Below are positions 410 to 63,985 of a stretch of DNA of 64,000 nucleotides, in pieces. The translations under genes and the position numbers were made by a program. The stretch comes from Bugula neritina (Eukaryota > Animalia > Bryozoa), in the NCBI GenBank assembly GCA_964035545.1, contig OZ037766.1, positions 248,001 to 312,000 of the forward strand, in the 5' to 3' direction. The notes under the pieces were generated by a model. The model did not search any database. It saw only the letters and a list, made by a program, of their open reading frames with translations, and had not been told where the DNA came from. Position 1 is the stretch's first letter. Each line of letters starts with the position of its first letter.

Positions 410-3400
410 CTTCAAGTGAGAGGATGAGGAGAGGTCCTCTCTCTGTACAGATGTGAATCAGTTCAGATGTTGGATCAAAGGAAATACCAATTGGTTCTGA
501 GATGTGAGGGAATTCCCACATCAGAGAGAGAGTTGTGTTCTCCACTTTATATCTTCTCACTTTACCATCTTCAGTGTAGTCTCCTATGAGGAGAGTTGAA
601 TCTGGGAGGATGCATACAGGACGAGGGAACTTCATCTCAGGAAGTGGGAACTTCTGTGTTTTATTGTCAACTAGATTACAGACTACCAGCTGTTTCTCTC
701 TCCTGTCTACAATATACACTAGAGAGAGGTGCTGAGCTATTCTATAGGCTGTGAGTTTATCTACTGGATGTTTGTAAATAGAGCGAGACTTCTTAAAAGA
801 GTTCGGATCAAGAAGTGCGACTTTAGCTGATTTCTCCTTCTTGTTATAACAGCTGGCAACCATCACCCCTTCAGGTTGGATTATCTCCCCCCACACTGTA
901 GTGTTGGTGTCCTTCACTGAGCTGATAGTATCCAGAGTGTGTCTATTTATTACTTCTACACCTTCTGGTGTCCAACACATGAGATGTCCATCAGCTGAGA
1001 TGTTTACTCTGTAATACCTTCCACGTACAGGAAGTCCATCAGACTGTAGAGAAGCTGGTGGCTGCAGCAGCTTCAGTCCCAGACTGTCTTCACTGTCTGC
1101 AACAACAAAATAACAATTCTATAACTTGAGAATCTCATCACCTGCACAGGTAGAGAGTGTTTTGTTAATACTGACAGCAGGTAGTCAGCATTACACAGTT
1201 TAGCAGCTCACTTATACATCATAAACTCTGAAACACTGCAGAAATGTCTCATAATGTGAGAGTAGAAATAACAAAACTCAATCCTCTAATAAATGTCAAA
1301 ATGAAACGCAGCAACATTTCTAAATATCTGAGACTTTAAAAAAAATTAACGAATGAAATTCAATTGATTTACAAGCAGAAAGTTATTTATAGTTAGTGTT
1401 ACTATTTATAGACTCCACCTACATGTTGGTACCAAGATGCTGTCAGGAAGTACACACTTCTCTATTACACCAATATCTGTAGCCTTTTCCATCTCCTCAC
1501 TCATCTCTTTGTAGTCTCTCACAATCCCTGCATCATTGAACTTATCAACTGCATGTTGTACTCTGTCCACCAGAGACTGTCTGCCTATTGTCTTACTCAA
1601 GGCCAGCTCTATTCTATAATTATCCACTATCTGTGTGCAGCTTTTCAAATATCCATATATTTCTAGCCTCAGGTTTGTAGCTCTCTTTCTAATCTCTTCT
1701 ATCTAATAAATAGTAACACATTATAACCACATCTGCACCTCACAACCTCTACACTTGACATGAGAGTGACAGCTGACAGACCACCCACTGAGTAGACACA
1801 CAGTGACTCAGTCATGTGACACTCTATACACAGTAGACTGCTAGTACATCATGTGACTAGTCTCCTCCTTCTAACAAATCAAGTAGTATACTGAAAGTAT
1901 TGTCTTCAAATAAAAATTAAATAGCCCGAGAGTTTGTGTGGAAAATAGACTGTGCAAAGAAACGTAAATCGTAAACTTCACGTCAGCATACCTGAGCATC
2001 AGCGACAGAGTTTACTCTGGCAACCATCTTCTTCACTTCATCTTCTATTTTACTCAGTTCTTTCCAGGCATCCTTCGAGATGTCATTCAACTCTGCAACT
2101 TTCTCAGACAGAGTCTCTATTCCACCAGTCAGACTTTCTCGTAACTCACAAGACAAATCACTCAATGATGCCATGTCATGGAATGCTGCCTCCCCTTCTG
2201 TATAAATAATATCACAATATTTCATTAAATCACATTCCTTCTAACAGGATGTGCTGATTGACTCACAGTAGAAGAGCAAACTTACAGAGCAGTTGATATT
2301 AGAAACACTGAGTAACACTACATAAAACATATCAAAAGTATAAATAAAGACATGCTGCCTGAACCCTTGACCTAAGGTATATGTTTAAATCAGCTGGCAG
2401 CACTATCATATGATATTTGTATAATACAGTATAATTATTAAACAGTTGTACTCTGTCTCAAGTATTGCTATCAGAGTTGGTCATAACTCAACCTTCACTA
2501 ACATGACTTGTACAGAGGAATATTCTAGAAACATGTCACTAAATATACATCCCTCACTTGAAGTCATTGAGTTACAGAAATTAAATCAACAGAAACTCCT
2601 CATAAAGGGAACAAAGAAAGTTGAAGATTAGAAATTCCTAAGAATTCAATTCAACAACAGAATATGAATTAATGTCTGCACTAACCACTGCTGTCTCACA
2701 CAAAGTTTAATTTTAGAGAATACATCCGGGTGTGGGCTGTGAAACTTATTTGAAAATAAAATCTTTCACAGAATCTACCCAACAACTAGTCCAAATGGAG
2801 TTGCTAAAACTCACTTTAGTCTCTCACATTGCTACTTTGCTACTGTTAGTCTTAATGAATATAACGTTACATTATTTATTTGGTTTCAATTTGATGTAAA
2901 CAGAAACAAGAAAATACCTGTCTTACCATTACAGCCAGTCTTCATATCACATCTCATACAGAATATCTGGTGACACTTGGAACACACTTCTGTCAGCTGT
3001 TCATGTTTGTGATGTTTACATTCAGTTATAGTATATCTTTGGGGAGAAGCTCTGTAGACCTCAATGTCAATCAACTGATGTCTATCTCCCATCAGCTCTC
3101 TGTGATTCTGTATAATAAAGGTCAACAGTTCAGTTGGTAGTATTTTCACTAACAAGTCTGTCATAGTTGACCTTCTGCATTGTAGAATCTGTTTATTTGG
3201 TATACAAAGTCACACATACTCAGTATTTCTATCTAATAACATTCTACACACAAAACAGTCCTGGTTTAGTAACCAAATACTGATACATGTTTTAAAGACT
3301 CACCTTGTGATGCTGTTCACACAACTTCTTCTGAATCTCTACACAGAAGACTACAGCCTCTGTTCCATCCTCACACACATCACAGAGAATGGGGGGAGGT

Positions 3401-3885
3401 TTGGGAGGAGTTTTGTATTCTAGAACATCGCCCAGCTTAGCCACTGGTAGCGTTGTGGGATCAGTGATGTCATAGAATCCCTTTCTAAAATATAGTATTA
3501 GTCAGTGAGTTACAAATAATGAGATAATCAGTGACCTTGAACTTTCATTATGAGAGATTATCCTGATGACTAGACAGCTAGTAACCAGAGTGTGCATGAA
3601 GATACAGAACTGACAGTTTTAAGATAAATACAGTCACTATGAGTGTTAGAGAATAATAATATGCACTCACATAAAACATATCATGTTCATTAGTGCAACT
3701 TACCTGCAGTACACACAGTCGATGTGGGTTTTCTTGTAGCCAATGTCTGTTTTAAGACAATTTATACAATAGACGTGTAAACAGGGCAAAGTTCTGGGAT
3801 CTTCCAGTTTATCAAAATGGTGTAGACAATACCCACATCTATAGGAGTTATTGAGTCTTTTCTTTACTACCCTGGAGTCTGCCAT
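410..3885 (-). CDS. TRIM (RING-Bbox1-Bbox2-coiled coil-NHL-like beta-propeller) E3 ligase, copy 1, N-terminal type A; last exon lies left of the window
   Basis: GT-AG exons in consistent phase: 3885-3704 (RING, CGYC...PRTLPCLHVYCINC...CVYC), 3484-3304 (B-box1, CDVCEDGTEAVVFC), 3107-2918 (B-box2, CKHH...CSKCHQIFCMRC), 2197-1992 and 1702-1423 (coiled coil), 1096-410 (propeller with NHL-like PxPVCI..D..LLIGD and PxGISFD motifs). Confidence 0.9.
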
Positions 3886-8386: not shown

Positions 8387-8847
8387 TGCCCGTCTGCACC
8401 GTTCCCCCACACGTACACTTTATCTACAACATATATTCAACATTTGGGAGATACAAAACTTGAATAATTACACCAATACAAGCACTGCAGCTTCACTTTA
8501 CTAGTTATACTAAGTTGAAAGAGTTGAAAGACAATGAGAATAACATGAAAATATTACCTCCAACTCAACGAGAGTTACTTTGTACTCATTCTGGATGAAT
8601 AATCATATAGACTAAAAATATCAATTAGAAACACAAAGAGAGACATAAGTTTACCTTTGCTGATGCACACGGTATGACTAGAGCCACATGATAGTAAGTA
8701 ATTCTCATTAGTCCCTATAGGGAGGACACTGTCCCTCAGGAGAGTAAGTGAAGAGTCAGCAGGATGTTTACCCTCCCCTTGCCCTTTCTGTCCTCTCTGA
8801 CCGTGATCATTTCCTCCCCAGCAAATCACCGAGCCGTCCTCAATCAT
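8387..8847 (-). pseudogene. RCC1-repeat (RLD) protein gene fragment, two 5' coding exons
   Basis: Exon 8847-8655 (MIEDGSVICWGGNDHGQRG...LLSCGSSHTVCISK) splices in phase to 8423-8387 (DKVYVWGNGADGQ). These are canonical RCC1 repeat motifs. A possible 5' UTR exon has its donor at ~10154. No in-phase continuation was found. Confidence 0.7.
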
Positions 8848-8867
8848 CTAGAATGAGTCAGCATACC

Positions 8868-12303: not shown

Positions 12304-13645
12304 TTAGTATTTTATTGTGTATCTCCTCAGTCCATCATCCCCACATCCTAGAAACACCTTGTCTCTGTTATACACAGCAATGTCACACACCCTGTCACTC
12401 ACACCAAGACTTTCTCTGGGAATTCTTACCATCAGTTCACCTGTAAATAGAATAACACCAGATTGTATCAGTTTGAGACAAATAGACAGACTACAGTGAC
12501 ATCACAACAGCTGACACAACTACATACAGTTTCTACTTTCTAGTATAATATAGTAACTGAAATATGTTCAATAATATACCTGCAGCTGAACTTCTACCAG
12601 TCAGTATTGAATAATTCACTGAGCTGCTCTACACTTTACTTCATAATAAATGACAACATGGAGAGAAGAAACTCAACATACAAACTTAGTGCTCAGCTAA
12701 TATAATTATAAATAATTACATAATATAAGATGTACTCCAACATTATCACATATTAAATACTTGACAAGAACCAACCACAGCCACCTGAGTCCCACCAGCA
12801 AACACTGCTCTACCAGCCATCATCAAATTACAATAGTCTCAGTAATGGCAGTCAAAAAGTATCAAATTATTTATCTTTAAATTATCTGATGACCAAAACA
12901 ATAGCAGCACTAGACTGAAGTCAAACTACAACTCATAACTCATGTGTAGCTGGCAGTCTGTACAGTTGTTAGACTGAGCACCTCTAAAAGTACTGTAAAA
13001 CACTTCCATGAAATACTAATTATTGCCAGTACTAATTAGACATATAATATAGCCTATGAGTGGAAGTTGTTTACAGATAATAATCATTTATCACAATATT
13101 GTATTAGAGCAGAGGGGGGGGGGCTGTCTAAATATTTCAGAGCAAAGGCCACTGAAATGGAATATTCTGGTAGGGAGGGCCACACTGTAAACTTTAGTGC
13201 AGTGTGGTATATTTAAGACTGTTGCCATTAGCAAATCTTACGGAATCATATGGGCGCCATTATGCCGAGATTGGTACCGCGAGTTTATATAAGTTATAAA
13301 GGAAAAATTTTGCCACTTTTGTTATTTTATTTTTTTTCTATTTTATGTGTACATTTTTTTAATTTTTTTATTGGTAAAGTTTTTAAACACATTTTTAATG
13401 CACATAAAATTAAAAGAAAAATTAAAACTCAATCATGCACATAAATACAAAGCTATAAAGTTAAAGCTTCGCTGTGATTTTAATGTGAATATGAATTGAA
13501 TAATGCTTGCAATAACCATTATACACAAAATACGTTACAGTTGCTATAAATGCAAGACTAGTTAATTGGATGCAAATAGGCACGGTAATACTACTTAATT
13601 TATGCTATTTTTGAATTTTGTAGTAAATATTTGGCATGTATATAT

Positions 13646-13728
<83 letters not shown>

Positions 13729-13967
13729 TATTATATATATATAATATATAATATTATTATATGTATATATATATATATTATATATAATATCATTATATAT
13801 ATAATGTATATAATTTAATATATAATATAATAATATATTATATATGATATTATTATATATATAATATAATATATAATATAATAATATATTATATATATTA
13901 TATATGATATTATTATATAAATATAATATATAATATATATATAATATAACAATATATAATATATTAT

Positions 13968-14041
<74 letters not shown>

Positions 14042-17000
14042 CATGCCGAATATTTACTACAAATTTCAAAAATGGCATAAATTAAATAGTATTACCGTGC
14101 CTATTTGCATCCAATTTACTAGTCTTACATTTATAGCAACTGTAACGTATTTTGTGTAAAATGGTTATTGCAAGCATTATTCAATTCATATTCACATTGT
14201 AATCACAGCGAAGCTTAGACTTTATAGCTTTGTATTTACGTGCACGATTAAGTTTTAATTTTTTTTAAAATTTTTAAATGTATTGAAAATATGTTTAAAA
14301 ACTTTACCAATAAACAAAACTAAAAAAAAATGGACACATAAAAAAAAAAAATAAAATTACAAAATTGGCAAAATTTTTCCTTTATAACTTATATAAACTT
14401 GCGGTACCATTAGCGACATAATGATTTTTTATGGTTTAAAGTCAACACTTTTAAATATACCACACTGCTTTAGTGTAAGCTGCAGGTCACAGTATCAGTA
14501 TTTTTCAAACTGCTTTATGCTAAACTCCAATGACTCATTACACAATGAAGTCCGAACAGTTACTGCAGGCTGCATGTATGTAGTATGTGTATAAATATGG
14601 CATTTAAAATGTTGCTTTTTTTACTCTAATTCATATACATGTGTAAAACAATGTTATGTGGGGTATACCTTTGAGGGCCACATAAATGTATACTGGGGGT
14701 CACAACCAGCCCTGGGGCCGCCTGTTGAACAGCCCTGTATTAGAGTAATTAAATTTACTATAATAAACACAGTATTTACCTTCAAGTGAGAGGATGAGGA
14801 GAGGTCCTTTCCTTGTACAAATGTGAATCAGTTCAGATGTTGGATCAAAGGAAATACCAGTTGGTCGTGAGATGTGAGGGAATTCCCACATCAGAGTGAG
14901 AGTTGTGTTCTCCACTTTATATCTTCTCACTTTACCATCTGCAGTGTAGTCTCCTATGAGGAGAGTTGAGTCTGGGAGGATGCATACAGGATAAGGGTTC
15001 TTCATCTCAGGAAGTGGGAACTTCTGTATTTTATTGTCAACTAGATTATAGACTACCAGCTGTTTCTCTCTCCAGTCTACAATATACACCAGAGAGAGGT
15101 GCTGAGCTATACTATAGTAAGTGAGTTTATCTACTGAATGTTTGTAGAGAGAACGAGACTTCTTAAAGGAGTTCGGATCAAGAAGTGCGACTTCAGCTGA
15201 TTTCTCCTTCTTGTTATACCAGCTGCCAACCATCACCCCTTCAGGTTGGATTATCTCCAACCACAGTGTAGTGTTGGTGTCCTTCACTAAGCTGATAGTA
15301 TCCAGAGTGTGTCTATTTATTACATCTACACCTTCTGGTGTCCGACACATGAGATGTCCATCAGCTGAGATGTTTACTGTCCAACACTTTCCACGTACAG
15401 GAAGTCCATCAGACTGTAGAGAAGCTGGTGGCTGCAGCAGCTTCAGTCCCAGACTGTCTTCACTGTCTGCAACAACAAAAAAACAATTCTATAACTTGAG
15501 AATCTCATCACCTGCACAGGTAGAGAGTGTTTCGTTAATACTGACAGCAGGTAGTCAGCATAACACAGTTTAGCAGCTCACTTATACATCATAAACTCTG
15601 AAACACTGCAGAAATGCCTCATAATGTGAGAGTAGAAATAACAAAACTCAATCCTCTAATAAATGTCAACATGAAACGCAGCAACATTTCTAAATATCTG
15701 AGACTTTAAAATAAAATTCAAATTGATTGCAAGCAGAAAGTTATTTATAATTAGTGTTACTATTTATAGACTCCACCTACATGTGGGTACCAAGATGCTG
15801 TCAGGAAGTACACACTTCTCTATTACACCAATATCTGTAGCCTTTTCCATCTCCTCACTCATCTCTTTGTAGTCTCTCACAATCCCTGCATCATTGAACT
15901 TATCAACTGCATGTTGTACTCTGTCCACCAGAGACTGTCTGCCCATTGTCTTACTCAAGGCCAGCTCTATTCTATAATTATCCACTATCTGTGTGCAGCT
16001 TTTCAAATATCCATATATTTCTAGTCTCAGGTTTGTAGCTCTCTTTCTAATCTCTTCTATCTAATAAATAGTAACACATTATAACCACATCTGCACCTCA
16101 CAACCTCTACACTTGACATGAGAGTGACAGCTGACAGACCACCCACTGAGTAGACACACAGTGACTCAGTCTTGTGACACTCTATACACAGCAGACTGCT
16201 AGTACATCATGTGACTAGTCTCCTCCTTCAAACAAATAAAGTAGTATACTGAAAGTATTGTCTTCAAACACAAATTAAATGGCCCGAGAGTTTGTGTGAA
16301 AAATAGACTGTGCAAAGAAACATAAATCATAAATTTCACGTCAGCATACCTGAGCATCAGCGACAGCGTTTACTCTGGCAACCATCTTCTTCACTTCATC
16401 TTCTATTATACTCAGTTCTTTCCAGGCATCCTTAGAGATGTCATTCAACTCTGCAACTTTCTCAGACAGAGTCTCTATTCCACCAGTCAGACTTTCTCGT
16501 AACTCACAAGACAAATCACTCAATGATGTCATGTCATGGAATGCTGCCTTCCCTTCTGTATAAATAATATCACAATATTTCATTAAACTACATTCCTTTT
16601 AACAGAATGTGCTGATTGACTCACAGTAGAAGAGCAAACTTTCAGGGCAGTTGATATTAGAAAAACACTGAGTAACACTACAGAAAACATATCAAAAGTA
16701 TAAATAAAGACATGCTGCCTGAACCCTTGACCTAAGGTATATGTTTAAATTAGCTGGCAGCACTATCATATGATATTTGTATAATACAGTATAATTATTA
16801 AACAGTTGTACTCTGTCTCAAGTATTGCTATCAGAGTTGGTCATAACTCAACCTTCACTAACATGACTTGTACAGAGGAACATTCTAGAAACATGTCACT
16901 AAATATACATCCCTCACTTGAAGTCATTGAGTTACAGAAATTAAACCAACAGAAACTCCTCATAAAGGAAACAAAGAAAGTTGAAGATTAGAAATTCCTA

Positions 17001-18599
17001 AGAATTCAACTCAACAACAGAATATGAATTAATGTCTGCACTAACCACTGCTGTCTCACACAAAGTTTAATTTTAGAGAATACATCCAGGTGTGGGCTGT
17101 GAAATTTAACTTATTTGGAAAGAAAATCTTTCACAGAATATACCCAACAACTAGTCCAAATGGAGTTGCTATAACTCACTTTAGTCACTCACATTGTTAC
17201 TTTGCTACTGTTAGTGTTAGCCTAGGGCCACACTGTGCGTATTTTCGCATGCGAAAATTGAAACCACAAGTAGCAAAGGTGTCCACTGTAGGGTCAGTGA
17301 TGCGTGATAAATAAAGCTTTCATTTTTAAGTCGAACTCGCTTTCAATAAAACGCAATTTACTGGAATGTAGGGCTAAAATAAAGAAATTGGGCTCGCTTA
17401 ATAACTACCAGCCAATTAGGTGACGACGACAGAGACGATTCGCACTTGCGTTGAAAATGCAGAGCGACAAGTGCGAACATTTTCTCAACGCGCACAGTGG
17501 ACACCTTTGCTACTTGTGATTTCAATTTTCGCATGTGAAAATACGCACCGTGTGGCCCTAGGCTTACTGAATATAAAGTTACATTATTTATTTGGTTTCA
17601 ATTTGATGTAAACAGAAACAAGAAAATACCTGTCTTACCATTACAGCCAGTCTTCATATCACAGCTCATACAGAATATCTGGTGACAATTGGAACACACT
17701 TCTGTTAGCTGTTCATGTTTGTGATGTTTACATTCAGTTATAGTATATCTTTGGGGAGAAGCTCTGTAGACCTCAATGTCAATCAACTGATGTCTATCTC
17801 CCATCAGCTCTCTGTGATTCTGTATAATAAAGGTCAACAGTTCAGTTGGTAGTATTTTCACTAACAAGTCTGTCATAGTTGACCTTCTGCATTGTGAAAT
17901 CTGTTTATTTGGTATACAAAGTCACACATACTCAGTATTTCTATCTAATAACATTCTACACAAAACAGTCCTGGTTTAGTAACCAAATACTGATACACGT
18001 TTTAAAGACTCACTTTGTGATGCTGTTCACACAACTTCTTCTGAATCTCTACACAGAAGACTACAGCCTCTGTTCCATCCTCACACACATCGCAGAGAAT
18101 GGGTGCAGGTTTGGGAGGAGTTTTGTATTCTAGAACATCACCTAACTTAGCCACTGGTAGAGTTGTGGGATCAGTGATGTCATAGAATCCCTTCCTAAAA
18201 TATAGTATTAGTCAGTGAGCTACAAATAATGAGATAATCAGTAACCTTGAACTTTCATTATGAGAGATTATCCTGATGACTAGATAGCTAGTAACCAGAG
18301 TGTGCATGAAGATACAGAACTGGCAGTTTTAAGATAAATACAGTCACTATGAGTGTTACAGAATAATAATAATATGCACTCAGATAAAAAGATATCAAGT
18401 TCAGTAGTGCAACTTACCTGCAGTACGCACAGTCAATGTGGGTTTTCTTGTGGCCAATGTCTGTTTTAAGACAATTTATACAATAGACGTGTAAACAGGG
18501 CAGAGTTCTGGGATCTTCCAGTTTATCAAAATGGTGTAGACAATACCCACATCTATAGGAATTATTGAGTCTTTTCTTTACTACCCTGGAGTCTGCCAT
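12304..18599 (-). CDS. TRIM-NHL-like E3 ligase, copy 2, type A, complete (~620 aa)
   Basis: Exons 18599-18418, 18194-18014, 17819-17630, 16555-16350, 16060-15781, 15466-14780, 12440-12304 sum to 1863 nt in an open frame. The last exon (absent from the ORF track) reads GELMVRIPRESLGVSDRVCDIAVYNRDKVFLGCGDDGLRRYTIKY*. Confidence 0.92.
13200..14467. mobile_element. Non-autonomous hAT-type foldback element/MITE in the last intron of TRIM copy 2
   Basis: Termini CAGTGTGGTATATTTAA...TTAAATATACCACACTG; 8-bp TSD CTTTAGTG at 13192-99 and 14468-75; ~400-bp imperfect inverted arms around a (TA)n-rich core. A single CTTTAGTG is present at the paralogous sites (~29810, ~46390, ~62994). Confidence 0.9.
13637..14040. 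repeat. (TA)n/AT-rich microsatellite forming the core of the foldback element
   Basis: Read directly from the sequence. Confidence 0.95.
17220..17563. mobile_element. MITE, PIF/Harbinger (Tourist)-like, in intron 3 of TRIM copy 2
   Basis: ~70-bp TIR GCCTAGGGCCACAC...GTGTGGCCCTAGGC with a TTA TSD. Absent at the paralogous site ~2852 in copy 1. Confidence 0.85.
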
Positions 18600-23419: not shown

Positions 23420-23540
23420 AATGTAAGTTACTGAATTATATGTACTCTTAGTATGATAATGTAAGTTACTGAATTATATATACTCTTAGTATGATAATGT
23501 AAGTTACTGAATTATATATACTCTTAGTATGATAATGTAA
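23420..23540. repeat. 38-bp VNTR, ~3 copies
   Basis: (AATGTAAGTTACTGAATTATATRTACTCTTAGTATGAT)n. Confidence 0.9.
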
Positions 23541-24339
23541 GACTTTCTAAGGATACAAATAGCAGGGTGGTAGAACAGCTTCTATCAGTACTTGTCAACT
23601 GAGATATCTTTTCCTATACTAACTCAATGTTATTGTTGAGGTATAATAAGACATGAATTTGTAGGTTCTTAGAGATGTTCCGAAAGCACGGCGAGAAATA
23701 CAGCTACACTCGAGGGCGTCTTCCTGCAGACATATTGTGTCTATAATAGACGTGTACGAGAATGTATACGGTGGTAACAGGTGTCTGCTCGTTGTCATGG
23801 AATGGTAGGCTGATGTTTACTCAGTTTCTTGTTTTTATTGGTCAATGAAATGATTTTTATCGATAATATTGATCTATGTGAAGAACGTATGAACTTTGAA
23901 CTTTCAAGCCAGTTCAATGGTTAAGCTGTGTAAGAATAACCTGCAATGAAAGTCATCAATAAATGATATTATGGTAACAGATGTAGTAACTATGGTAACA
24001 GATGTGGTGATGTAATGCTATGTGTAGTTTTACTTTGTATTTCCAGCATGGAAGGTGGGGAGTTGTTCACTTCTATTCAAGCATGAGCAGACAATGCCTT
24101 TACTGAGAGAGGTGAGATTATCTTCCCTTTGTTACTATTAGACTGGCTGTTATAGTAGCAGCAGTAGTGGTACTGGTAGTAGTATTCATTAGAATACACT
24201 GTATCTTCTAGTCATGTATAACACATGTTTTGTGTTGTAGAAGCAGCTGCTATTATGAGGGACATTGTGGAGGCCATAGCATTTCTACACCATCTAGACA
24301 TTGCTCACAGAGACTTGAAGGTCATACTTCTCTCTCTTT

Positions 24340-25035
24340 AGTACTAACTCTATCACTAACTCTAGTGCTAACTCTATCACTAACTCTATTACTAACTCTA
24401 TCACTAACTCTCTCACTAACTCTCTCACTAACTCTATCACTAACTCTCTCACTAACTTTATCACTAACTCTAGTACTAACTCTCTCACTAACTCTATCAC
24501 TAACTCTATCACTAACTCTATCACTAACTCTAGTACTAACTCTCTCACTAACTTCATCACTAACTCTCTCACTAACTCTATCACTAACTCTCTAGTACTA
24601 ATTCTCTCACTAACTCTCTCACTAACTCTAGTACTAACTCTATCACTAACTCTATCACTAACTCTATCACTAACTCTATCAATAACTCTCTCACTAACTT
24701 TCTCACTAACTCTATCACTAACTCTCTCACTAACTTTATCACTAACTCTAGTACTAACTCTCTCACTAACTCTATCACTAACTCTATCACTTATAACTCT
24801 ATCACTAACTCTAGTACTAACTCTCTCACTAACTTTATCACTAACTCTCTCACTAACTCTATCACTAACTCTCTTGTACTAATTCTCTCACTAACTCTCT
24901 CACTAACTCTAGTACTAACTCTATCACTAACTCTATTCACTAACTCCAGTACTAACTCTATCACTAACTCTATCACTAACTCTCTCACTAATTCTCTCAC
25001 TAACTCTATCACTAACTCTAGTACTAACTCTCTCA
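24340..25035. repeat. 12-bp intronic minisatellite in MK2 copy a
   Basis: (ACTAACTCTATC/CTC/AGT)n. Confidence 0.95.
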
Positions 25036-25091
25036 CCCACTCATTCTATTTACTCGTATACATGATAATTAATTTCTACTGTGTCTTGTAG

Positions 25092-25223
<132 letters not shown>

Positions 25224-25345
25224 TAGGGAATAGGGCTATACACGTGTAGTTAGTACTAGTCAAGACTCTATCTGCTGAAGTACTGGACCTTCAAGTCACG
25301 TCTATTTATGCTACACTGGAGAATTATTCACACAAAACTGTCATT

Positions 25346-25509
25346 CACTGCGTTTCCATTATCGCATTATGCGAATGGATTTTTTCATTCGGCTAATGGA
25401 AACAGTTACATCGGATGAAACCGCAACTATAAGGTAATGCAAACCACAAACCACAAATAATCCGTACGAAGCATTCATTCGCATTATGCGCAGTCATGGA
25501 AACGCAGTG
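25346..25509. mobile_element. 164-bp MITE with CACTG termini (CMC/CACTA-like) in an intron of MK2 copy a
   Basis: TIR CACTGCGTTTCCAT...ATGGAAACGCAGTG, flanked by ATT on both sides. Absent at ~42037 and ~58611. Confidence 0.8.
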
Positions 25510-25621
25510 ATTACTGTAGTAAACATAGCGAGTAACCATGGTAACTCTAGTAAACATAGCGAGTAACCACGGTAACTGTAATATAATTTTAGCTCCGGAG
25601 GTTCTGGGACCAGAGAAGTAG

Positions 25622-25723
<102 letters not shown>

Positions 25724-39981: not shown

Positions 39982-41486
39982 ATCACAATATAGAAAGTAT
40001 TAGTCTTCCTGCATACATTCACAGTAGACAAGACACAATCATTATATATTTAAATTATTAATTATTATTATTACTTATTATCATTATGATATGACTTAAA
40101 ATATGAGTATCAGTATGAATGTAATATAATTTAATCATTAGTTCATAATATAATAATTCTGAAAGTTTATCAATACTGGTGCCGGTGGAATAGTAGTACA
40201 CTTAGACGTGTTATAACCTGCTCTCTAATGTTAGTGGTAATACCCGCAGACAGTGACTGTATGCACACAACTTGTGGCTCTCACTTAGACTATAGTCCAT
40301 ATTCAAGCTAACTATTTTTATATCGGTCTTAGACTCTACAAAATCCTGTTGGGTGTTGGCAAGTAATGTCAACGAATATATCAAATGATGGTGTCCAAAG
40401 CTTAGCTTAGCAATGTGGGGGGAGTCTCTATTAAATCAGAAAGAAGGTTGAGTAGTAAGCTTGCTGACATATTAAAAAGAGCATATCTAGCATGTATCAG
40501 AAAAATAGATGTCACAATATAGACGGCATCATCTCAGGTTAAGTGGATATTTTATCTTCCTGCATATATTCACAGTAGACAAGACACAACCATGTTGGTC
40601 AGAATCACCACAGTTCAGACTTTCTAAGGATACAAATAGCAGGGTGGTAGAACAGCTTCTATCAGTACTTGTCAACTGAGATATCTTTTCCTATATTAAC
40701 TCAGTGTTATTGTTGAGGTATTATAAGACAAGAATTTGTAGGTTCTTAGAGATGTTCCGAAAGCACGGAGAGAAATACAGCTACACTCGAGAGCGTCTTC
40801 CTGCAGACATATTGTGTCTATAATAGACGTGTACGAGAATGTATACGGTGGTAACAGGTGTCTGCTCGTTGTCATGGAATGGTAGGCTGGTGTTTACTCA
40901 GTTTCTTGTTTCTATTGGTCAATGAAATGATTTTTAACGATAATATTGATCTACATGTATGTGAAGAACGTATGAACTTTGAACTTTCAAGCCAGTTCAA
41001 TGGTTAAGCTGTGTAAGAATAACCTGCAATGAAAGTCATCAATAAATGATATTATGGTAACAGATGTAGTAACTATGGTAACAGATGTGGTAACTAGGGT
41101 AACAAGTGTGGTAACTATAGTAACATTTGTGGTAACTATGGTAACAGATGTGGTGATGTAATGCTATGTGTAGTTTTCCTTTGTATTTCCAGCATGGAAG
41201 GTGGGGAGTTGTTCACTTCTATTCAAGCATGAGCAGACAATGCCTTCACTGAGAGAGGTGAGATTATCTTCCCTTTGTTACTATTAGACTGGCTGTTATA
41301 GTAGCAGCAGTAGTGGTACTGGTAGTAGTATTCATTAGAATACACTGTATCTTCTAGTCATATATAACACATGTTTTGTGTTGTAGAAGCAGCTGCTATT
41401 ATGAGGGACATTGTGGAGGCCATAGCATTTCTACACCATCTAGACATTGCTCACAGAGACTTGAAGGTTATACTTCTCTCTCTCTC

Positions 41487-41740
41487 TCTATCACTAACTC
41501 TATCACTAACTCTCTCACTAACTCTATCACTCACTCTAGTACTAACTCTATCACTAACTCTATCACTAACTCTCTCACTAACTCTATCACTAACTCTAGT
41601 ACTAACTATCACTAACTCTCTTCACTAACTCTCTCACTAACTCTCACTAACTCTCTCACTAACTATATCACTCACTCTACCACTAACTCTATCACTAACT
41701 CTAGTACTAATTCTATTCACTAACTCTAGTACTAATTCTA
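41487..41740. repeat. 12-bp intronic minisatellite in MK2 copy b
   Basis: Same unit, shorter array. Confidence 0.95.
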
Positions 41741-41785
41741 TTTACTCGTATACATGATAATTAATTTCTACTGTGTGTCTTGTAG

Positions 41786-41917
<132 letters not shown>

Positions 41918-42043
41918 TAGGGAATAGGGCTATACATGTGTAGTTAGTACTAGTCAAGACTCTATCTGCTGAAGCACTGGACCTTCAAGTCATGTCAAAT
42001 TATGCTACACTGGAGAATTATTGACACAAAACTGTCATAACTG

Positions 42044-42457
<414 letters not shown>

Positions 42458-44612
42458 TGACTGAGTATGATTATTGAGTGTTACTTTGAGTGTGTGCTTG
42501 TTATCTGAAGGTAGTATTTGAAATGTAATCCACTCATCAGCTATAGAATTGTTATGATTCTCTTACAGCCAAATCCTTAATAAAGAGTCTGTTGAACACA
42601 GACCCTGATAAGAGGTTGACCATACAGCAAGTGGTTAGACATCCTTGGATAGCTGTAAGTTCTCTAGACATCAGTGTTACTTTAATGTGACTTGTTATAA
42701 GAGTCGTTGGAGCTCGGGTTTAGCCCTAGAACTATCCCACTACAGCACTGAGGGACCACAGGGTACACACTGAGTGGTTAGTGACAGTGTTCTAGAGGAT
42801 AGATCTGTGGCTATATTCTCTGGCTGTTTTATAAATCAGCAATATATTTATATCGTATTATAATAATGATAATAATGTGTGCACCAACTCATAGCTGTGA
42901 CTGTGTGTTATACAGAATAACCTGGCTGTCCCCCAGACACCTCTGGCTACTCAGGATATCCTCAGAGAAGAGAATGATCACTGGATGGAAGTTCAGGTTA
43001 GTGTCTGTCTGTGTGTCTGTGTGTCTGTATAATATATACTATATATACACTACATATTATACTACTCTGATATATATGCTCTGATAATACTCTGTTTGAT
43101 AGGATGAGATGGACAGAGCATTGGCAGAGAGGAGAATAGATGAGGACCAAGTACATCTCAAGAATATCGGGCTGTCAGAGAACCCCCTTCTTGCTCGTAG
43201 ACGAAACAACAGGAACTGAAGTCTACTTTGTTTGAAATATTGTTGCTATGGAAACACTGACATTGCTAGAGAAATAAATTATCAGTATGTAACATTGTGG
43301 ATGTAGTTCTCAGCTTAGAATGTTTACATTGTGGAGTAATCATTAAATATTCTCTCTATTTACAATTAGCATAGTGAGTATCAAGATCTGAAATGTATAA
43401 TATTCTCATGTCATATTATTCACCTGTACTTTTAGCAGGTAAATATATTGTAACAGTATCCATGTTTGTATATAGTTAATAGTACATATCTAGTGACTAG
43501 CATATCTCGTAACATTTATATTGGCTATAGAATATATATTTTTATTATTTCTATTTCATGTTGAGCTATGAACAATGTTTTAGGTTTTTATATGTAAAAT
43601 ATTTTATGCAAGTTTTGGTATCATATTTCTATGCAATAATATGCTACAATTGATTATTTGTATTTGATGTTTTTAATTTTATTAAAACTGCACTAATTTA
43701 GTTATTCACGATATTGGTATTTAATACAATGTTCTTAATGCATCTCATGTTCTACCTTTTGAATGGGAAATAAATATAGAAATATTGCTGGTGATGGCTA
43801 GACATGTTCTTCAGTTTTCAAATATAAATATAGATGCTAGTGAATTATATACAGAGTAGAGGAAGGGCACACAGAGGAGTTAGTAAAGTCAAGTTGAGGT
43901 TACACTGGTTATTTACATAATGAAACAAAATTATTTGTAAGCCACTTGTGTGGTGCTTTTCCTAACCAGAAAAACTGGAAGCTATACCTATACTTATTCT
44001 GTTTTCCACAGTGAAATAACAACCAGTATTTAGTTGAACCTCCATGACAGCTATTTATATCCTTATGATGGTACAGGAAGTTATTCAACTTAACTCCTAC
44101 ACAATTCTAGCAACAACACAGCAATTTCACTTGTTGCTCATCTAACAGATAGTAATACTAGTTTGCATTACGTAATCAGCTAATGGAAGTACATTATTGG
44201 CTGATTGGCTGGTTCTTAGTTACAGGAACTTACAGGGGAGGAACATGTACACCAAGTTTAGCAATGCAATCCTACAATCATGATGTAAGTCACGTGACAG
44301 GCTTGTATAATAATATAATATTAGATGTGAAGCATTGCAGAGCACACACTGCATGGTGCAAATACAAGAAAATAATCTTTCTATAAGCAGCTCCGACTTG
44401 GGGGTGATCAAGTGCAGCAAGTTTGTGGTTCTCAAGTGTAGAGTTAAGGACTTAGACTGGAAACTTAAACCCCCAACTTCAAACTCAATATCCCAGACTA
44501 CTGCACTCGGGTTGCTTATACATGATATAAATACTGAAACAAGATAAATTTACACTAATTACTGGAGTTGTCTTGCATTGGTACTGAGTTCAGTATGGCA
44601 GTCAGGCTATCC

Positions 44613-45499: not shown

Positions 45500-48400
45500 T
45501 TAGTATTTTATTGTGTATCTCCTCAGTCCATCATCTCTACATGCTAGAATCACCTTGTCTCTGTTATACACAGCAATGTCACACACCCAGCTACTCACAC
45601 CAAGACTTTCTCTGGGAATTCTTACCAGCAGTTCACCTGTAAATAGAATAACACCAGATTGTATCAGTTTGAGACAAACAGACAGACTACAGTGACATCA
45701 CAACAGCTGACACAACTACATGCAGTTTCTACTTTCTAGTATAATATAGTAACTGAAATATGTTCAATAATATACCTGCAGCTGCACTTCTACCAGTCAG
45801 TATTGAATAATTCACTGAGCTGCTCTACTCCTTACTTCATAATAAATGACAACATGGAGAGAAGAAACTCAACATACAAACTTAGTGCTCAGCTAATATA
45901 ATTATAAATAATTACATAATATAAGATATACTCCAACATTATCACATATTAAATACTTGACAAGAACCAACCACAGCCACCTGAGTCCCACCAGCAAACA
46001 CTGCTCTACCAGCCATCATCAAATTACAATAGTCTCAGTAATGCCAGTCAAAAATTATCAAATTATTTATCTTTAAATTATCTGATGACCAAAACAATAG
46101 CAGCACTAGACTGAAGTCAAACTACAACTCATAACTCATGTGTAGCTGGCAGTCTGTACAGTTGTTAGACTGAGCACCTCTAAAATTACTGTAAAACACT
46201 TCCATGAAATACTAACTATCGCCAGTACTAATTAGACATATAATATAGCCTATGAGTGGAAGTTGTTTACAGATAATAATAAGTTATCACAATATTGTAT
46301 TAGAGCAGGGGGGGAGGGGGGCTGTCTAAATATTTCAGAGCAAAGGTCACTGAAATGGAATATTCTAGTAGGGAGGGCCACATTGTAAACTTTAGTGTAA
46401 GCTGCAGGTCACAGTATCAGTACTTTTCAAATAACTTTATTCCAAATTCCTATGACTCATTACATAATGAAGTCCTAATAGTTACTGCAGGCTGAATGTA
46501 TGTAGTATGTGCATAAATATGGCATTTAAAAAGCGATGTTTTCACTACAATTCACATACATGCGTGAAATGACTTTGTATTGGCCTTTGAGAGGCACATA
46601 AATGTAGGCTGGGGGTCACAACCAGCCCTGGGGTCGCCTGTTGAACAGCCCTGTATTAGAGTAACTAAACTTACTATAATAAACAGAGTATTTACCTTCA
46701 AGTGAGAGGATGAGGAGAGGTCCTTCCAGTGTACAGATGTGAATCAGTTCAGATGTTGGATCAAAGGAAATACCAGTTGGTTCTGAGATGTGAGGGAATT
46801 CCCACATCAGAGTGAGAGTTGTGTTCTCCACTTTATATCTTCTCACTTTACCATCTTCAGTGCAGTCTCCTATAAGGAGAGTTGAGTCTGGGAGGATGCA
46901 TACAGGGTCAGGGTACTTATTCTCAGGAAGTGGAAACTTCTGTATTTTATTGTCAACTAGATTATAGACTACCAGCTGTTTCTCTCTCCTGTCTACAATA
47001 TACACTAGAGAGAGGTGCTGAGCTATTCTATAGGCTATGAGTCCATCTACTGAATGTTTGTAGAGAGAGCGAGACTTCTCAAAGGAGTTCGGATCAAGAA
47101 GTGCGATTTCAGCTGATTTCTCCTTCTTGTTATAACAGCTGCCAACCATCACCCCTTCAGGTTGGATTATCTCCCCCCACACTGTAGTGTTGGTGTCCTT
47201 CACTGAGCTGATAGTATTCAGAGTGTGTCTATTTATTACTTCTACACCTTCTGGTGTCACACACATGAGATGTCCATCAGCTGAGATGTCTACTGTCCCA
47301 CACTTTCCACGTACAGGAAGTCCATCAGACTGTAGAGAAGATGGTGGCTGCAGCAGCTTCAGTCCCAGACTGTCTTCACTGTCTGCAACAACAAAATAAC
47401 AATTCTATAACTTGAGAATCTCATCACCTGCACAGGTAGAGAGTGTTTTGTTAATACTGACAGCAGGTAGTCAGCATAACACAGTTTAGTAGCTCACTTA
47501 TACATCATAAACTCTGAAACACTGCAGAAATGTCTCATAATGTGAGAGTAGAAATAACAAAACTCAATCCTCTAATAAATGTCAACATGAAACGCAGCAA
47601 CATTTCTAAATATCTGAGACTTTAAAAAAATTAACGAATGAAATTCAATTGATTTACAAGCAGAAAGTTATTTATAGTTAGTGTTACTATTTATAGACTC
47701 CACCTACATGTTGGTACCAAGATGCTGTCAGGAAGTACACACTTCTCTATTACACCAATATCTGTAGCCTTTTCCATCTCCTCACTCATCTCTTTGTAGT
47801 CTCTCACAATGCCTGCATCATTGAACTTATCAACTGCATGTTGTACTCTGTCCACCAGAGACTGTCTGCCCATTATCTTACTCAAGGCCAGGTCATATCT
47901 ATAATTAACCACCATCTCTGTGCTGCTTCTCAGATATTCTGATAATTCATCCTTCAGTTCCTCACCTCTCTTTCTAATCTCTTCTATCTAATAAATAGTA
48001 ACACATTATAACCACATCTGCACCTCACAACCTCTACACTTGACATGAGAGTGACAGCTGACAGACCACCCACTGAATAGACACACAGTGACTCAGTCAT
48101 GTGACACTCTATACACAGTAGACTGCTAGTACATCATGTGACTAGTCTCCTCCTCCTTCCTGTCAATCACTCACACAGCCAACCTCCCTGTGTGAGTGAT
48201 TGACAGTTGCAGAAGGATGAGTGAGTCATCTGTATTGACAGGTTCACCTGCACTGAGTGTCACGTGATGAATGACTACTGCTACTTGTACACAGAATGGT
48301 GATGGTTTAATGGCTGCCGATTTCTGAGTACATATGAAGTTTTGTACTGCAGCATAACATTAGAGAATTAGACTACACAGTTTTACTCTAAATAGTAGTT

Positions 48401-49873
48401 ATCTATATTCTCTACAAACATGTCTGCCAACCTTTGCATTAACTGTAGCATATACTCTGGCAAACATCTTCTTCACATCATCTTCTATCTCACTCAGCTG
48501 TCTCCAGGCATTCTTTGATATGTCATTCAACTCTGAAATCTTCTCAGACAGAATCTTCATTTCCTCAGTCAGTTTGTCTCTCAGCTCACGGGATAAATCA
48601 TTCAACGATGTTACGTTGTGAGAAGCTGCTTTTCTCCCTGAAATAATATTCAAGTATTTACCTCAAGACATTCAGTGTATCGTTACCTTAGACTGAGTTC
48701 TATTCATGTGGCTACACAGGAACACATGCTACTCTCATTTAAACTTAGATATGCTTTCTCAAACTCGGTGGATGTTATAAACAGCTAAAGTTAGAGAAGT
48801 GAAAGAAAGAAATCACCTGCCACTTTTCCACATCCACTCTTAGAGTCACACCGAATACAGAATCTCTGGTGACACTGAGAACACGCCTCTATCAGCTGAT
48901 GGTGTTCATGATGTTCACAGTTAGTAACGGAGTAACGCTGTGGAGATGCTGTGTAGAGGTCAATGGGAACAAACTGGTGTGTAGTGTTCATGTAAGTCTT
49001 CAAGTGTGCTTCATGGTTCTAACAACAGAAAACATGGTTGAATCATGAATCACAGCTAGTAGGTTGGTGCTTGCATATAAGGTATTGATAGTCAGGTTGA
49101 CAGTACTAGATGGTATATAATGTAAGGTGATAACAGCAGCACAGAAGACAGTGTGCTGTACTATACACACCGACAGACACACAGACATACAGCCATGACA
49201 TATCTCTGTCTTTCCTGAGACTAGAAGAGAATTCTACAGTATAACTCATCAGTATGTCCTGTACTAGTAGCTACAGTCAACACACAACTCACCTGCTGAT
49301 GCTGTTCACACAACTTCTTCTCACTCTCCACACAGAAGACTACAGCCTCTGTTCCATCCTCACACACATCACAGAGAATGGGTGTAGGTTTGGGAGGAGT
49401 TTTGTATTCTAGAACATCACCCAGCTTAGCCACTGGTAGAGTTGTGGGATCCGTGATGTCATAGAATTGCTTACTGCAAACAAAATTTCATAGAAGTTGT
49501 ATTCAATAAATGACTCACAAAAAGGTTTTTTACTTCAGCGTACCTTAATTTTGACATAGTTTGTCCAACAATTCAATACAGCAATCAGTAATATACAAAT
49601 CTAATCACTTGTTCAGAGAATTGATTACTGTGTTACATATTGGAAATTATAAACAGTAAGTCATATTGTTTGTGGGCTGACAGTAACTCACCCACAATAT
49701 GCACACTTGATGTGATCTTTCCTGTAGCCAATATCTGTCTGCAAACACCTCATACAGTAGACATGTAGACAGGGCAGGGTTCTGGGATCTCCTAAATTGT
49801 TGAAATGCTGGTTGCAGTATCCACATCTGTATGAGTCATTGAGCTTTCTCTTGATTATTCTAGAATCTGCCAT
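45500..49873 (-). CDS. TRIM-NHL-like E3 ligase, copy 4, B/A chimera, complete (~624 aa)
   Basis: Exons 49873-49692, 49473-49293, 49018-48817, 48637-48432, 47987-47708, 47382-46696, 45636-45500. The 5' part matches copy 3; the 3' part of the second coiled-coil exon and the following intron match copy 1. Confidence 0.92.
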
Positions 49874-57099: not shown

Positions 57100-57223
57100 G
57101 ACTTTCTAAGGATACAAATAGCAGGGTGGTAGAACAGCTTCTGCCAGTACTTGTCAACTGAAATATCTTTTCCTATACTAACTCAGTGTTATTGTTGAGG
57201 TATAATAAGACATGAGTTTGTAG

Positions 57224-59786
<2,563 letters not shown>

Positions 59787-61443: not shown

Positions 61444-62103
61444 GTATACCCTAAACATGGATAATTGGTGAGATTGGAGTTGTCTTTTACCAGCAACTCA
61501 CGCATACTGGGACAATTTCACACACAATCTACATAATATAGTTTCTGAGGCTATTATTAAACTATTGAAGGAAAAACTTGCTAAGAATAGCCGCAGCTCT
61601 ACAATTTATTACAGTAACTCTTTTTATATACAATACTTATAAAACACATGATATCTGCAGGAATATTTGTTCTACTCTGTACCAGCCATTTAAACTCACA
61701 AGTTATATACAGCTACTACTTGATAAGGAAGTAACTAGACTCATGTTGAGATGAAACACACTCATTATTTACCTCTCAAATAAAAGAGCTACTGTTGTGA
61801 AGAGAAATATTTAAATTCTTATAACTAAGTAGGTAGATGAGTCATAAACCAGTCAGAAACAAGCAAACTTTATTGAGTGACTACAGAGTAGTGACAGCAT
61901 AGCAGAGTAAATATGTTACATAATAATTACTAATCAACGTCAAATACTACATATAAGCAGTGTAAGTCCTGTAGAATATATAATATTATACTGAAGTATT
62001 ATTACACTGTAAGTAGAACACAATATATTATATTTGACATGTACTATGTGTGTGTATTGATGACCTCACTGAGCTGATTATTAGTAAACTGTAGCTGATA
62101 AGT

Positions 62104-63985
62104 TTAGTATTTTATTGTGTATCTCCTCAGTCCATCATCTCTACATGCTAGAAACACCTTGTCTCTGTACACAGCAATGTCCCACACCCAGCTACTCACA
62201 CCAAGACTTTCTCTGGGAATTCTTACCATCAGTTCACCTGTAAATAGAATAACACCAGATTGTATCAGTTTGAGACAAATAGACAGACTACAGTGACATC
62301 ACAACAGCTGACACAACTACATACAGTTTCTACTTTCTAGTATAATATAGTAACTGAAATATGTTCAATAATATACCTGCAGCTGCACTTCTACCAGTCA
62401 GTATTGAATAATTCACTGAGCTGCTCTACTCCTTACTTCATAATAAATGACAACATGGAGAGAAGAAACTCAACATACAAGCTTAGTGCTCAGCTAATAT
62501 AATTATAAATAATTACATAATATAAGATGTACTCCAACATTATCACATATTAAATACTTGACAAGAAACAACCACAGCCACCTGAGTCCCACCAGCAAAC
62601 ACTGCTCTACCAGCCATCATCAAATTACAATAGTCTCAGTAATGGCAGTCAAAAAGTATCAAATTATTTATCTTTAAATTATCTGATGACCAAAACAATA
62701 GCAGCACTAGACTGAAGTCAAACTACAACTCATAACTCATGTGTAGCTGGCAGTCTGTACAGTTGTTAGACTGAGCACCTCTGAAATTACTGTAAAACAC
62801 TTCCATGAAATACTAACTATTGCCAGTACTAATTAGACATATAATATAGCCTATGAGTGGAAGTTGTTTACAGATAATAATCATTTATCACAATATTGTA
62901 TTAGAGCGGGGGGGGGGGGGGGGGGGGTGTCTAACCATTTCAGAGCAAAGGCCACTGAAATGGAATATTCCAGTAGGAAGGGCCACACTGTAAACTTTAG
63001 TGTAAGCTGCAGGTCACAGTATCAGTACTTCTCAAATAACTTTATTCCAAATTCCTATGACTCATTACATAATGAAGTCCTAATAGTTACTGCAGGCTGA
63101 ATGTATGTAGTATGTGTATAAATATGGCATTTAAAAAGTTGCTTCTCTACTCTAATTCATATACATGTGTAAAATAATTTTGCGTTATATCTTTGAGGGT
63201 CACATAAATGTAGGCTGGGGGTCACAACCAGCCCTGGGGCCGCCTATTGAACAGCCCTGTATTAGAGTAACTAAACTTACTATAATAAACAGAGTATTTA
63301 CCTTCAAGTGAGAGGATGAGGAGAGGTCCTTCCCTTGTACAGATGTGAATCAGTTCAGATGTTGGATCAAAGGAAATACCAGTTGGTAGTGAGATGTGAG
63401 GGAATTCCCACATCAGAGTGAGAGTTGTGTTCTCCACTTTATATCTTCTCACTTTACCATCTTCAGTGAAGTCTCCTATGAGGAGAGTTGAGTCTGGGAG
63501 GATGCATACAGGGTCAGGGTACTTCATCTCAGGAAGTGGGAACTTCTGTATTTTATTGTCAACTAGATTACACACTACCAGCTGTTTCTCTCTCCTGTCT
63601 ACAATGTACACTAGAGAGAGGTACTGAGCTATTCTATAGTAAGAGGGTTCATCTACTGAATGTTTGTAGAGAGAGCGAGTCTTTTTAAAGGAGTTCGGAT
63701 CAAGAAGTGCGACTTCAGCTGATTTCCCCTTTCTGTTATACCGGCTGCCAACCACCACGCCTTCAGGTTGGATTATCTCCCCCCACTCTGTAGTGTTGGT
63801 GTCCTCCACTGAGAACATAGTAACCAGAGTGTGTCTATTTATTACTTCTACACCTTGTGTCCAACACATGAGATGTCCATCAGCTGAGATTTTTACTCTC
63901 CAACACTTTCCATGTACAGGAAGTCCATCAGACTGTAGAGAAGCTGGTGGCTGCAGCAGCTTCATTCCCAGACTGTCTTCACTGT
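62104..63985 (-). CDS. TRIM-NHL-like E3 ligase, copy 5; only the two propeller exons are in the window
   Basis: Exons 63985-63302 (684 nt, one-codon deletion) and 62237-62104 (134 nt, one-codon deletion). Both are in frame with intact splice sites. Confidence 0.88.

Follow-up and report, generated by a model that had tools for sequence, protein, structure and literature searches.

Tandem TRIM genes with a positively selected NHL-like propeller face in the bryozoan Bugula neritina: a candidate recognition repertoire

The TRIM-NHL proteins known to date regulate RNA in development and are conserved; Mei-P26 and TRIM32 lack the filamin domain, as does the family described here. Nematode and plant F-box and MATH-BTB expansions, the subject of work by Thomas in 2006, reportedly combine a conserved ligase-side domain with a positively selected substrate-binding domain, and these expansions of ubiquitin-ligase adaptors have been proposed as anti-pathogen repertoires. 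Among TRIM proteins, the fast-evolving, expanded antiviral members are described as vertebrate PRY-SPRY proteins, and the groups found in invertebrates as conserved (PMC2533329). The teleost finTRIMs (PMC2657112) and the TRIM5-like group 2 (PMC2533329) are clustered, lineage-specific expansions. The top surface of NHL propellers is a ligand face (PMC5908797, PMC9070667).

The Bugula neritina family is likewise a clustered, lineage-specific expansion and resembles finTRIM and TRIM5 in its near-constant RING/B-box region, in positive selection confined to the C-terminal domain and in module shuffling. A genome-wide count, as had been proposed in a preliminary description of this locus, gave ~95 full-length propeller exons and ~100 RING exons, compared with 84 finTRIM genes in zebrafish (PMC2657112). 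In contrast to finTRIM and TRIM5, the C-terminal domain is a beta-propeller and not B30.2/PRY-SPRY, and the host is an invertebrate; the family would thus work like finTRIM/TRIM5 but, having no B30.2 domain, is not a member. The predicted RBCC followed by an NHL-like propeller is the arrangement of TRIM2, TRIM3, TRIM32, TRIM71, Brat, Mei-P26 and LIN-41, yet identity to these proteins is 8-13%, there is no Pfam NHL match or constant basic top face, and ~95 fast-evolving copies stand in place of a few conserved ones. F-box and MATH-BTB proteins are cullin adaptors with different folds, whereas the Bugula proteins would be single-chain RING ligases. The same RING-B-box-coiled-coil-propeller architecture and length (619 aa) are found in Watersipora subatra XP_067933727.1 ("TRIM25-like") and XP_067941719.1, whose propellers are remote homologs by profile (E 7e-6 and 4e-5; ~25% identity). 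The Watersipora relative has a zf-B_box match at E 0.0013, and a model of its C-terminal domain shows 24 strands, making six blades; in the Watersipora genome XP_067933727.1 has no introns, unlike the seven-exon Bugula genes. A literature search covering few subscription papers found no paper describing the present family.

The window, the whole 64,000-nucleotide stretch of B. neritina contig OZ037766.1 that was analysed, contains five tandem TRIM genes, all on the minus strand and with seven exons each, encoding in order a RING, two putative B-boxes, a predicted coiled coil and an NHL-like propeller (products of 620-624 aa), which upholds the domain order first proposed. Copies 2-4 are complete and intact, with no internal stop and canonical splice sites. 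Scaffold here means the RING/B-box/coiled-coil half.

410..3885, minus strand: TRIM copy 1, exons 1-6, open frame with GT-AG sites, scaffold type A (3704-3885 RING; 3304-3484; 2918-3107; 1992-2197; 1423-1702; 410-1096 propeller)
12304..18599, minus strand: complete TRIM copy 2 of 620 aa with scaffold type A; uninterrupted frame and canonical splice sites (18418-18599, 18014-18194, 17630-17819, 16350-16555, 15781-16060, 14780-15466, 12304-12440)
28917..33390, minus strand: complete TRIM copy 3 of 624 aa with scaffold type B, from frame and splice sites (33209-33390, 32808-32988, 32332-32533, 31947-32152, 31163-31442, 30120-30806, 28917-29053)
45500..49873, minus strand: complete TRIM copy 4 of 624 aa, type B in exons 1-4 and with a B-to-A chimera as exon 5 (49692-49873, 49293-49473, 48817-49018, 48432-48637, 47708-47987, 46696-47382, 45500-45636)
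47886..47892, minus strand: recombination breakpoint in copy 4 exon 5, from diagnostic sites
62104..63985, minus strand: TRIM copy 5, exons 6-7 in the window, one-codon deletion in each
410-1096, 14780-15466, 30120-30806, 46696-47382, 63302-63985: exon 6 (propeller) of copies 1-5
30120..30806, minus strand: reference propeller exon (copy 3 exon 6), ~4.75 blades
28917..29053, minus strand: reference last exon, blade 5 last strand and blade 6 strands a-c by repeat register

Exon 7 of copy 1 is intact ~0.6-0.75 kb before the window start, and the copy 5 exons upstream of exon 6 lie beyond the window. Copy 3 has a probable 5′ UTR exon from 33666 upward, and the splice joints of its gene model, with exon-limited depth, are seen in RNA-type contigs of the family. 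Across the family, splice joints occur in contigs from four studies, which indicates that it is transcribed and spliced; this evidence is family-level, and the runs, unchallenged or of unspecified stage, are only guessed to be RNA. The 216-aa ORFs reported by the ORF finder are exon 6 read on into intron 6 and not proteins. Assembly or haplotype duplication was rejected since the units are 3-8% apart with differing minisatellite lengths and scaffold type, and related exons occur in other samples. The RING matches Pfam zf-RING_UBOX (32.2 bits, cut-off 25.2) and its C3HC4 ligands are present in 11/11 exons read. B-box 1 is degenerate, with a weak PF22586 match (E 0.009) and one cysteine ligand replaced; B-box 2 has no Pfam B-box match and was read directly as C-x2-H-x7-C-x2-C-x4-C-x2-C. 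Exon 4 gives weak matches to many coiled-coil families in Pfam.

The propeller fold is nearest to NHL domains, as had been suggested. The exon-6 model (pLDDT 86), which covers ~4.75 blades only, has as its top four structural matches the NHL domains of TRIM71, TRIM2, Lin41 and Mei-P26 (Z 18.3-18.9, rmsd 2.7-2.9 Å, 8-13% identity), with nidogen YWTD and PAL tying within 1 Z. NHL-repeat proteins are reached by profile search (E 5e-8), and in the Atlas the closest clusters are NHL ones (0.94). Neither exon 6 nor exon 7 matches Pfam NHL (PF01436) at E up to 1. For the propeller, nothing useful came from Pfam or from a PDB sequence search, and Foldseek returned generic propellers only. The "NHL" label comes from the predicted fold and remote profiles, without a Pfam NHL match. 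We infer a sixth blade from exon 7 and the 24-strand Watersipora model.

Exon 6 is 92-95% identical in nucleotides and 86-90% in amino acids among the five copies. The ten variable patches reported for these propeller exons and the one in the last exon of copies 2-5 agree exactly with the translations, the quoted codon sets agree with the sequence, and the variable residues do precede strand a and follow strand b of each blade. Site models on 29 propeller exons, from the best-scoring 30 of ~95, gave 2dL of 683 (M1a/M2a), 707 (M7/M8) and 674 (M8a/M8), with a positively selected class of omega ~12 at 9% of sites, and leaving the variable columns out of the tree building did not change the result. 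With only the five window copies 2dL was 101, and their whole-exon pN exceeded pS in 10/10 pairs (ratio 1.17-1.58). The selected codons of the reference propeller exon, counted from 30804 downward, are 25, 26, 28, 29, 41, 43, 67, 69, 82, 85, 113, 114, 131, 156, 158, 173, 175, 200, 218 and 219; those of the reference last exon are 15, 16, 18 and 33. With the top face assigned by strand topology from DSSP and not by atomic coordinates, 20/20 selected exon-6 sites fall on the top half of the propeller (p 9e-7), as do the four last-exon sites. Comparison of 12 genes gave omega 0.25 and 2dL 1.5 for exons 2-5 and 2dL 269 for exon 6. The propeller frame and scaffold are under purifying selection and ~24 top-face residues are under strong positive selection.

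It is important to ask whether such hypervariability could arise with no selection, through targeted mutagenesis of the DGR or AID kind, recombination artefacts, relaxed constraint or assembly error. Many codon changes involve two bases, the family does recombine, and simulation confirms that recombination inflates site tests. However, neutral simulations with recombination reached at most 2dL 80 and omega 3.6, and the observed 2dL is >8x this null, so an artefact of recombination is too weak a source. At the 20 selected codons, differences between the five copies number 76/92/32 at positions 1/2/3, versus 84/60/83 elsewhere; third positions of variable codons are fixed in 28-29/29 copies, including a fixed A (29/29 at codons 29 and 175), and since they are fixed the variability reflects selection and not DGR-like mutagenesis. 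No DGR template copy or reverse transcriptase frame was found in the window, and 30 propeller exons contain zero stops despite common Trp codons. The same sites also vary elsewhere: on other contigs, 21 independent paralogues vary at the 19 positions where the five copies show at least three residues (mean entropy 1.84 vs. 0.21 bits, p 9e-12), and 11 database proteins, derived from different samples, vary at the 20 selected sites (1.90 vs. 0.38). A no-selection origin is thus already largely refuted and we consider it very improbable. The preliminary description had called for an M7 vs. M8 test; sites with dN/dS>1 are present, their signal outlasts the recombination controls, and they sit on one face in a transcribed family that is no assembly artefact.

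The scaffold halves are not uniform, which the preliminary description did not mention: they form two types (72-79% nucleotide identity) plus mosaics, all joined to one propeller type. In copy 4 exon 5, 25/25 diagnostic sites are type B before the breakpoint and 41/44 are type A after it. Copy 5 is another mosaic, with a type A RING (98% amino acid identity to copy 1) and type B exons 3-5. The scaffold tree rejects a C2 clade (p-AU 1.5e-5), whereas the propeller tree keeps the C2 copies together. Within exon 6, four-gamete incompatibility of 0.37 vs. 0.28 in clonal simulations (3/100 reach it) hints weakly at fine-scale conversion, and incompatibility shows no trend with distance (PHI-like p 0.38). 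Segmental duplication enlarges the array, and unequal crossing-over or conversion recombines its scaffold and propeller modules.

Since the frame is constant, ~24 residues are driven to change and propellers are swapped between ligase halves, the propeller face can be read as a recognition repertoire. By analogy with finTRIM and TRIM5, we favor as the likelier reading a germline-encoded, lineage-expanded repertoire of predicted intracellular TRIM E3 ligases, a propeller-based counterpart of those families; the repertoire is inherited and its role is probably immune. From TRIM and NHL biology, the coiled coil would dimerise the protein, each paralogue's propeller face would bind a different fast-evolving ligand, most likely a protein (or nucleic acid) from a virus or other intracellular parasite, and the RING would ubiquitinate the bound ligand or signal. 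All 29 paralogues carry distinct site combinations (29/29), with W/R/G/Y enriched at selected sites. Brat/LIN-41-type RNA binding as a conserved property, raised in the preliminary description, is not favored because the 29 paralogues differ in net charge across the 20 selected sites, from -3 to +7, with no conserved basic patch. More tentatively, the family may amount to an "intracellular antibody" germline repertoire in a colonial invertebrate, in which ~95 RING ligases recognise and destroy viral, parasite or symbiont proteins through an NHL-derived face with six CDR-like patches and scaffold swapping, an independent version of the TRIM5/finTRIM strategy on a different fold.

Positive selection signifies an arms race, and the selection data do not name the opponent. 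Intragenomic conflict, in which ligases of the germ line recognise proteins or RNAs made by transposons, meiotic drivers or other selfish elements, would leave the same signature on an intracellular protein, and some TRIM-NHL proteins act in germline RNA pathways, Mei-P26 being a germline RNA regulator (PMC9070667). The variable face, however, has no conserved basic patch given its charge range, and family transcripts occur in runs of four studies, of unspecified stage; we regard this reading as unlikely. Less likely still is a repertoire that discriminates fused neighbour colonies, or bacterial symbionts and what they secrete. Bryozoans live in colonies, a bacterial symbiont is present in B. 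neritina, diversity is high, and several runs with the family are labelled symbiont metagenome, but the translated exons show no evident signal peptide or membrane segment, RING/B-box domains reside in the cytosol or nucleus, and the observed diversity is between paralogues. Propeller top faces are general protein-binding surfaces and the scaffolds are conserved, as might be expected if receptors for host substrates had diversified in development or proteostasis, through sub- or neofunctionalisation and without any external opponent. Yet the same sites reach omega ~12 in ~30 recent paralogues whose pS is near 0.05; this implies that turnover is ongoing, and stable host substrates seldom drive such turnover. 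To this explanation we assign little probability.

The family carries the evolutionary signature of vertebrate antiviral TRIMs on an NHL-like propeller in a lophotrochozoan. On the favored reading, a recognition repertoire of propeller-bearing ligases, the ~24 residues per protein are named as a candidate specificity code. With natural paralogues at hand, a standing question becomes directly testable: by what means do invertebrates, which have no adaptive immunity, recognise a diversity of intracellular pathogens?

New in the window, in addition to the two-type scaffold mosaics and the type switch in copy 4, are passenger MAPKAPK2 (MK2) kinase genes without exon 1, carried by three array units. 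Neighboring genes are:

8650..8847, minus strand: RCC1-like exon, ~3.5 kb downstream of copy 2
23665..26593, plus strand: MK2-like passenger, from exon 2 through the stop codon, exon 1 missing
40742..43219, plus strand: MK2-like passenger, from exon 2 through the stop codon, glycine-loop exon 1 missing, tail-to-tail with TRIM copy 4
57225..59786, plus strand: MK2-like passenger, from exon 2 through the stop codon, exon 1 missing, tail-to-tail with TRIM copy 5

The passenger at 23665..26593 has a nonsense codon and a frameshift (exon 25595-25785). The RCC1-like exon has a twin (98%) at an equal distance downstream of copy 1, outside the window.

The five minus-strand TRIM-like genes lie in tandem units of ~14-17 kb each, delimited by self-comparison of the window. 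Each gene has seven coding exons with GT-AG boundaries, and the open frames of copies 2, 3 and 4 are complete (620, 624 and 624 aa); the final exon of copy 1 is intact directly outside the window start, and exons 1-5 of copy 5 are located past the window end. The C3HC4 RING, whose Pfam score is over the cut-off, is encoded by exon 1, and a degenerate B-box 1 by exon 2. The cysteine/histidine pattern of a B-box 2 follows in exon 3, and exons 4-5 probably form a coiled coil. A 380-nt block (90-95% identical) occupies all four spacers, even that between copies 1 and 2, which otherwise differs from the others. Three minisatellites recur unit by unit with highly unequal copy number, the 12-bp array beginning immediately past the donor site of an exon of MK2 (MAPKAPK2-like).

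Repeated features of the array (window positions; C2 is the contig holding the window)
410-1096, 14780-15466, 30120-30806, 46696-47382, 63302-63985, minus: propeller exon 6 (687 nt), five copies, one per unit
6095-6470, 21394-21770, 36592-36950, 54022-54408: 380-nt spacer block
20770-21025, 35674-36205, 52261-53644: 23-bp minisatellite (11, 23, 60 copies)
23420-23541, 38571-39982, 56105-57100: 38-bp minisatellite (3, 37, 26 copies)
24343-25036, 41486-41741, 57940-58308: 12-bp minisatellite (57, 21, 31 copies)
23665-26593, 40742-43219, 57225-59786, plus: MK2 from exon 2 to stop, without exon 1, tail-to-tail with a TRIM gene
8650-8847, minus: RCC1-like exon ~3.5 kb downstream of copy 2; another at C2:243534-243731, ~3.5 kb downstream of copy 1

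Folded with 44 natural homologues, exon 6 is modelled as a propeller (pLDDT 86, pTM 0.82) whose top four structural matches among 48,161 PDB representatives are the NHL domains of TRIM71, TRIM2, Lin41 and Mei-P26 (Z 18.3-18.9, rmsd 2.7-2.9 A, identity 8-13%); nidogen and PAL rank next, at most 1 Z behind. Its Atlas neighbours are NHL clusters, and a propeller profile search reaches Pfam-NHL proteins. By repeat register, exon 7 would complete blade 5 and add most of blade 6, and a remote Watersipora subatra relative of the same architecture was modelled with 24 strands, that is, six blades. The coding region of W. subatra XP_067933727.1, possibly a retrocopy, is intronless (10001-11860 of its locus, L054), in contrast to the seven-exon genes of the window. 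The TRIM-NHL-like identity given in the preliminary description thus stands in part: the genes are built like TRIM-NHL genes and NHL domains are the best structural matches, but a Pfam search found no NHL repeats in exon 6 itself, and the charge range over the selected sites gives no sign of a conserved basic surface. They are most safely called "TRIM with a divergent NHL-like propeller".

All the variable patches and codon sets that this description lists occur in the window as stated. DNA identity between window copies of exon 6 is 92-95%, and pN exceeds pS in all 10 pairs (~7-10 silent against 28-43 replacement differences). Site models were run on 29 exons with custom code, whose M0 likelihood matches that of IQ-TREE; the sample, the 30 best-scoring of ~95 propeller exons read, is biased towards close paralogues. 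The proposed M7 versus M8 comparison favoured M8, with sites at omega >1 (2dL 707), as did M8 over M8a (2dL 674) and M2a over M1a (2dL 683, omega 12.2, 9% of sites), and the result held when the variable columns were left out of tree building, when a star tree was used and when only the five window copies were analysed. Twenty exon 6 sites exceed 0.95, as do four exon 7 sites (2dL 77); exons 2-5 of the same 12 genes gave omega 0.25 and 2dL 1.5. Recombination cannot explain this signal, since neutral simulations with 12-228 independent trees reached only 2dL 14-80 and omega <=3.6. Diversity at selected codons is 0.44 at position 1 and 0.56 at position 2, against 0.05 at four-fold sites; intron 6 divergence is 3-5.5%. 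Third positions of these codons are often invariant across all copies, and invariant A is among them. DGR-like or local hypermutation is thereby ruled out.

Rather than being scattered, all 20 exon 6 sites lie in the propeller half of the d-a and b-c connections (p 9e-7), in equivalent register blade after blade. Loops d-a and b-c make up the NHL top face. In published descriptions, NHL domains bind RNA through their top surface (PMC5908797, PMC9070667). Selected-site combinations are distinct in 29/29 exons, with a mean difference of 15/20 sites; Trp, Arg, Gly and Tyr are over-represented there, and the net charge spans -3 to +7.

Scaffold (exons 1-5) and propeller modules have been shuffled, a feature that the preliminary description does not mention. 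The two sequence classes of the scaffold, types A and B, are 72-82% alike in exons 1, 3, 4 and 5 (pS 0.3-0.8) and ~95% in exon 2, yet the propeller exons attached to them differ by pS ~0.05. Copies 1 and 2 have exons 3-5 ~96-97% like the cluster on contig C8, with exon 2 and propeller of C2 type; type B is the scaffold of copy 3 and of the next gene copy beyond the window; copy 4 changes from type B to A at 47886-47892; and copy 5 joins a type A RING to type B exons 3-5. In the exons 3-4 tree a C2 clade is rejected (p-AU 1.5e-5), but in the tree of the propeller frame every C2 copy falls into one group together with a single C1 copy (support 98/91). Six neighbouring genes thus hold four scaffold combinations and one propeller type. 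There are weak indications of finer reshuffling inside exon 6.

The family is transcribed, on family-level evidence that singles out none of the window copies. Contigs from four runs guessed to be RNA (four studies) map chiefly to exons and contain the splice joints 33209/32988, 32808/32533, 32332/32152, 31947/31442 and 31163/30806 as well as the exon 6-7 joint. Loose ends with type A exon 5 among them indicate that both scaffold types are transcribed.

With architecture, expansion, family expression, face-restricted positive selection and module exchange established, the window genes are well supported as a real, diversifying recognition-ligase family. The propeller of each TRIM would bind a fast-changing ligand, which the RING would ubiquitinate. 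On balance this ligand is probably pathogen-derived; genomic conflict or host-substrate diversification could instead drive the propeller diversity, or the repertoire could serve colony or symbiont discrimination. A mode of working similar to that of finTRIM and TRIM5 may be inferred (PMC2657112), although the family, having no B30.2, is not a member of either. In a published classification, fast-evolving TRIM sets are confined to vertebrates (PMC2533329).

Across the genome (216 Mb, 321 contigs) there are ~95 full-length exon 6 matches at >=53% identity, the majority on C8 (0-4.7 Mb), ~10 on C3 (15.6-16.3 Mb) and eight on C2; just three of those at >75% identity contain a stop codon. Roughly half of the ~100 matching RING exons tie in score, which suggests near-identical RINGs. 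The closest database protein to the propeller is at 87%, and the named remote relatives come from the bryozoan W. subatra. A second, remote tandem family of at least 20 propeller exons (24-27% identical to exon 6) at C8 6.63-7.16 Mb, with a RING match at 6999946, may represent a separate TRIM-propeller array. A further RING and propeller pair, also remote, lies directly before the window (C2:229103-232756).

The three window MK2 copies are nearly identical as protein; the first carries both a nonsense codon and a frameshift. Seven MK2 exon sets adjoin C2 TRIM genes; copies 1 and 2 have downstream, in place of MK2, the RCC1-like exon, whose two occurrences are the only ones in the genome. The MK2 exon 1 glycine-loop motif was found at C2:848545 and C1:2376333 only, the former within what looks like a complete MK2 gene, which faces a type B TRIM at C2:841.6 kb. 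The duplicated unit is likely to derive from this MK2/type B TRIM locus, the truncated MK2 pieces being probable passengers.

Short fragments matching exon 6 residues 30-91 only (65-71%) are scattered in the C8 cluster (263239, 456614, 739519, 2726007, 3732591, 3858901) and may be pseudo-exons or conversion donors. Two near-identical paralogues 139 kb apart, C3:16085497 (L016) and C3:16224658 (L017), share the same residues at 20/20 selected sites and either stem from a very recent duplication event or were duplicated in the assembly.
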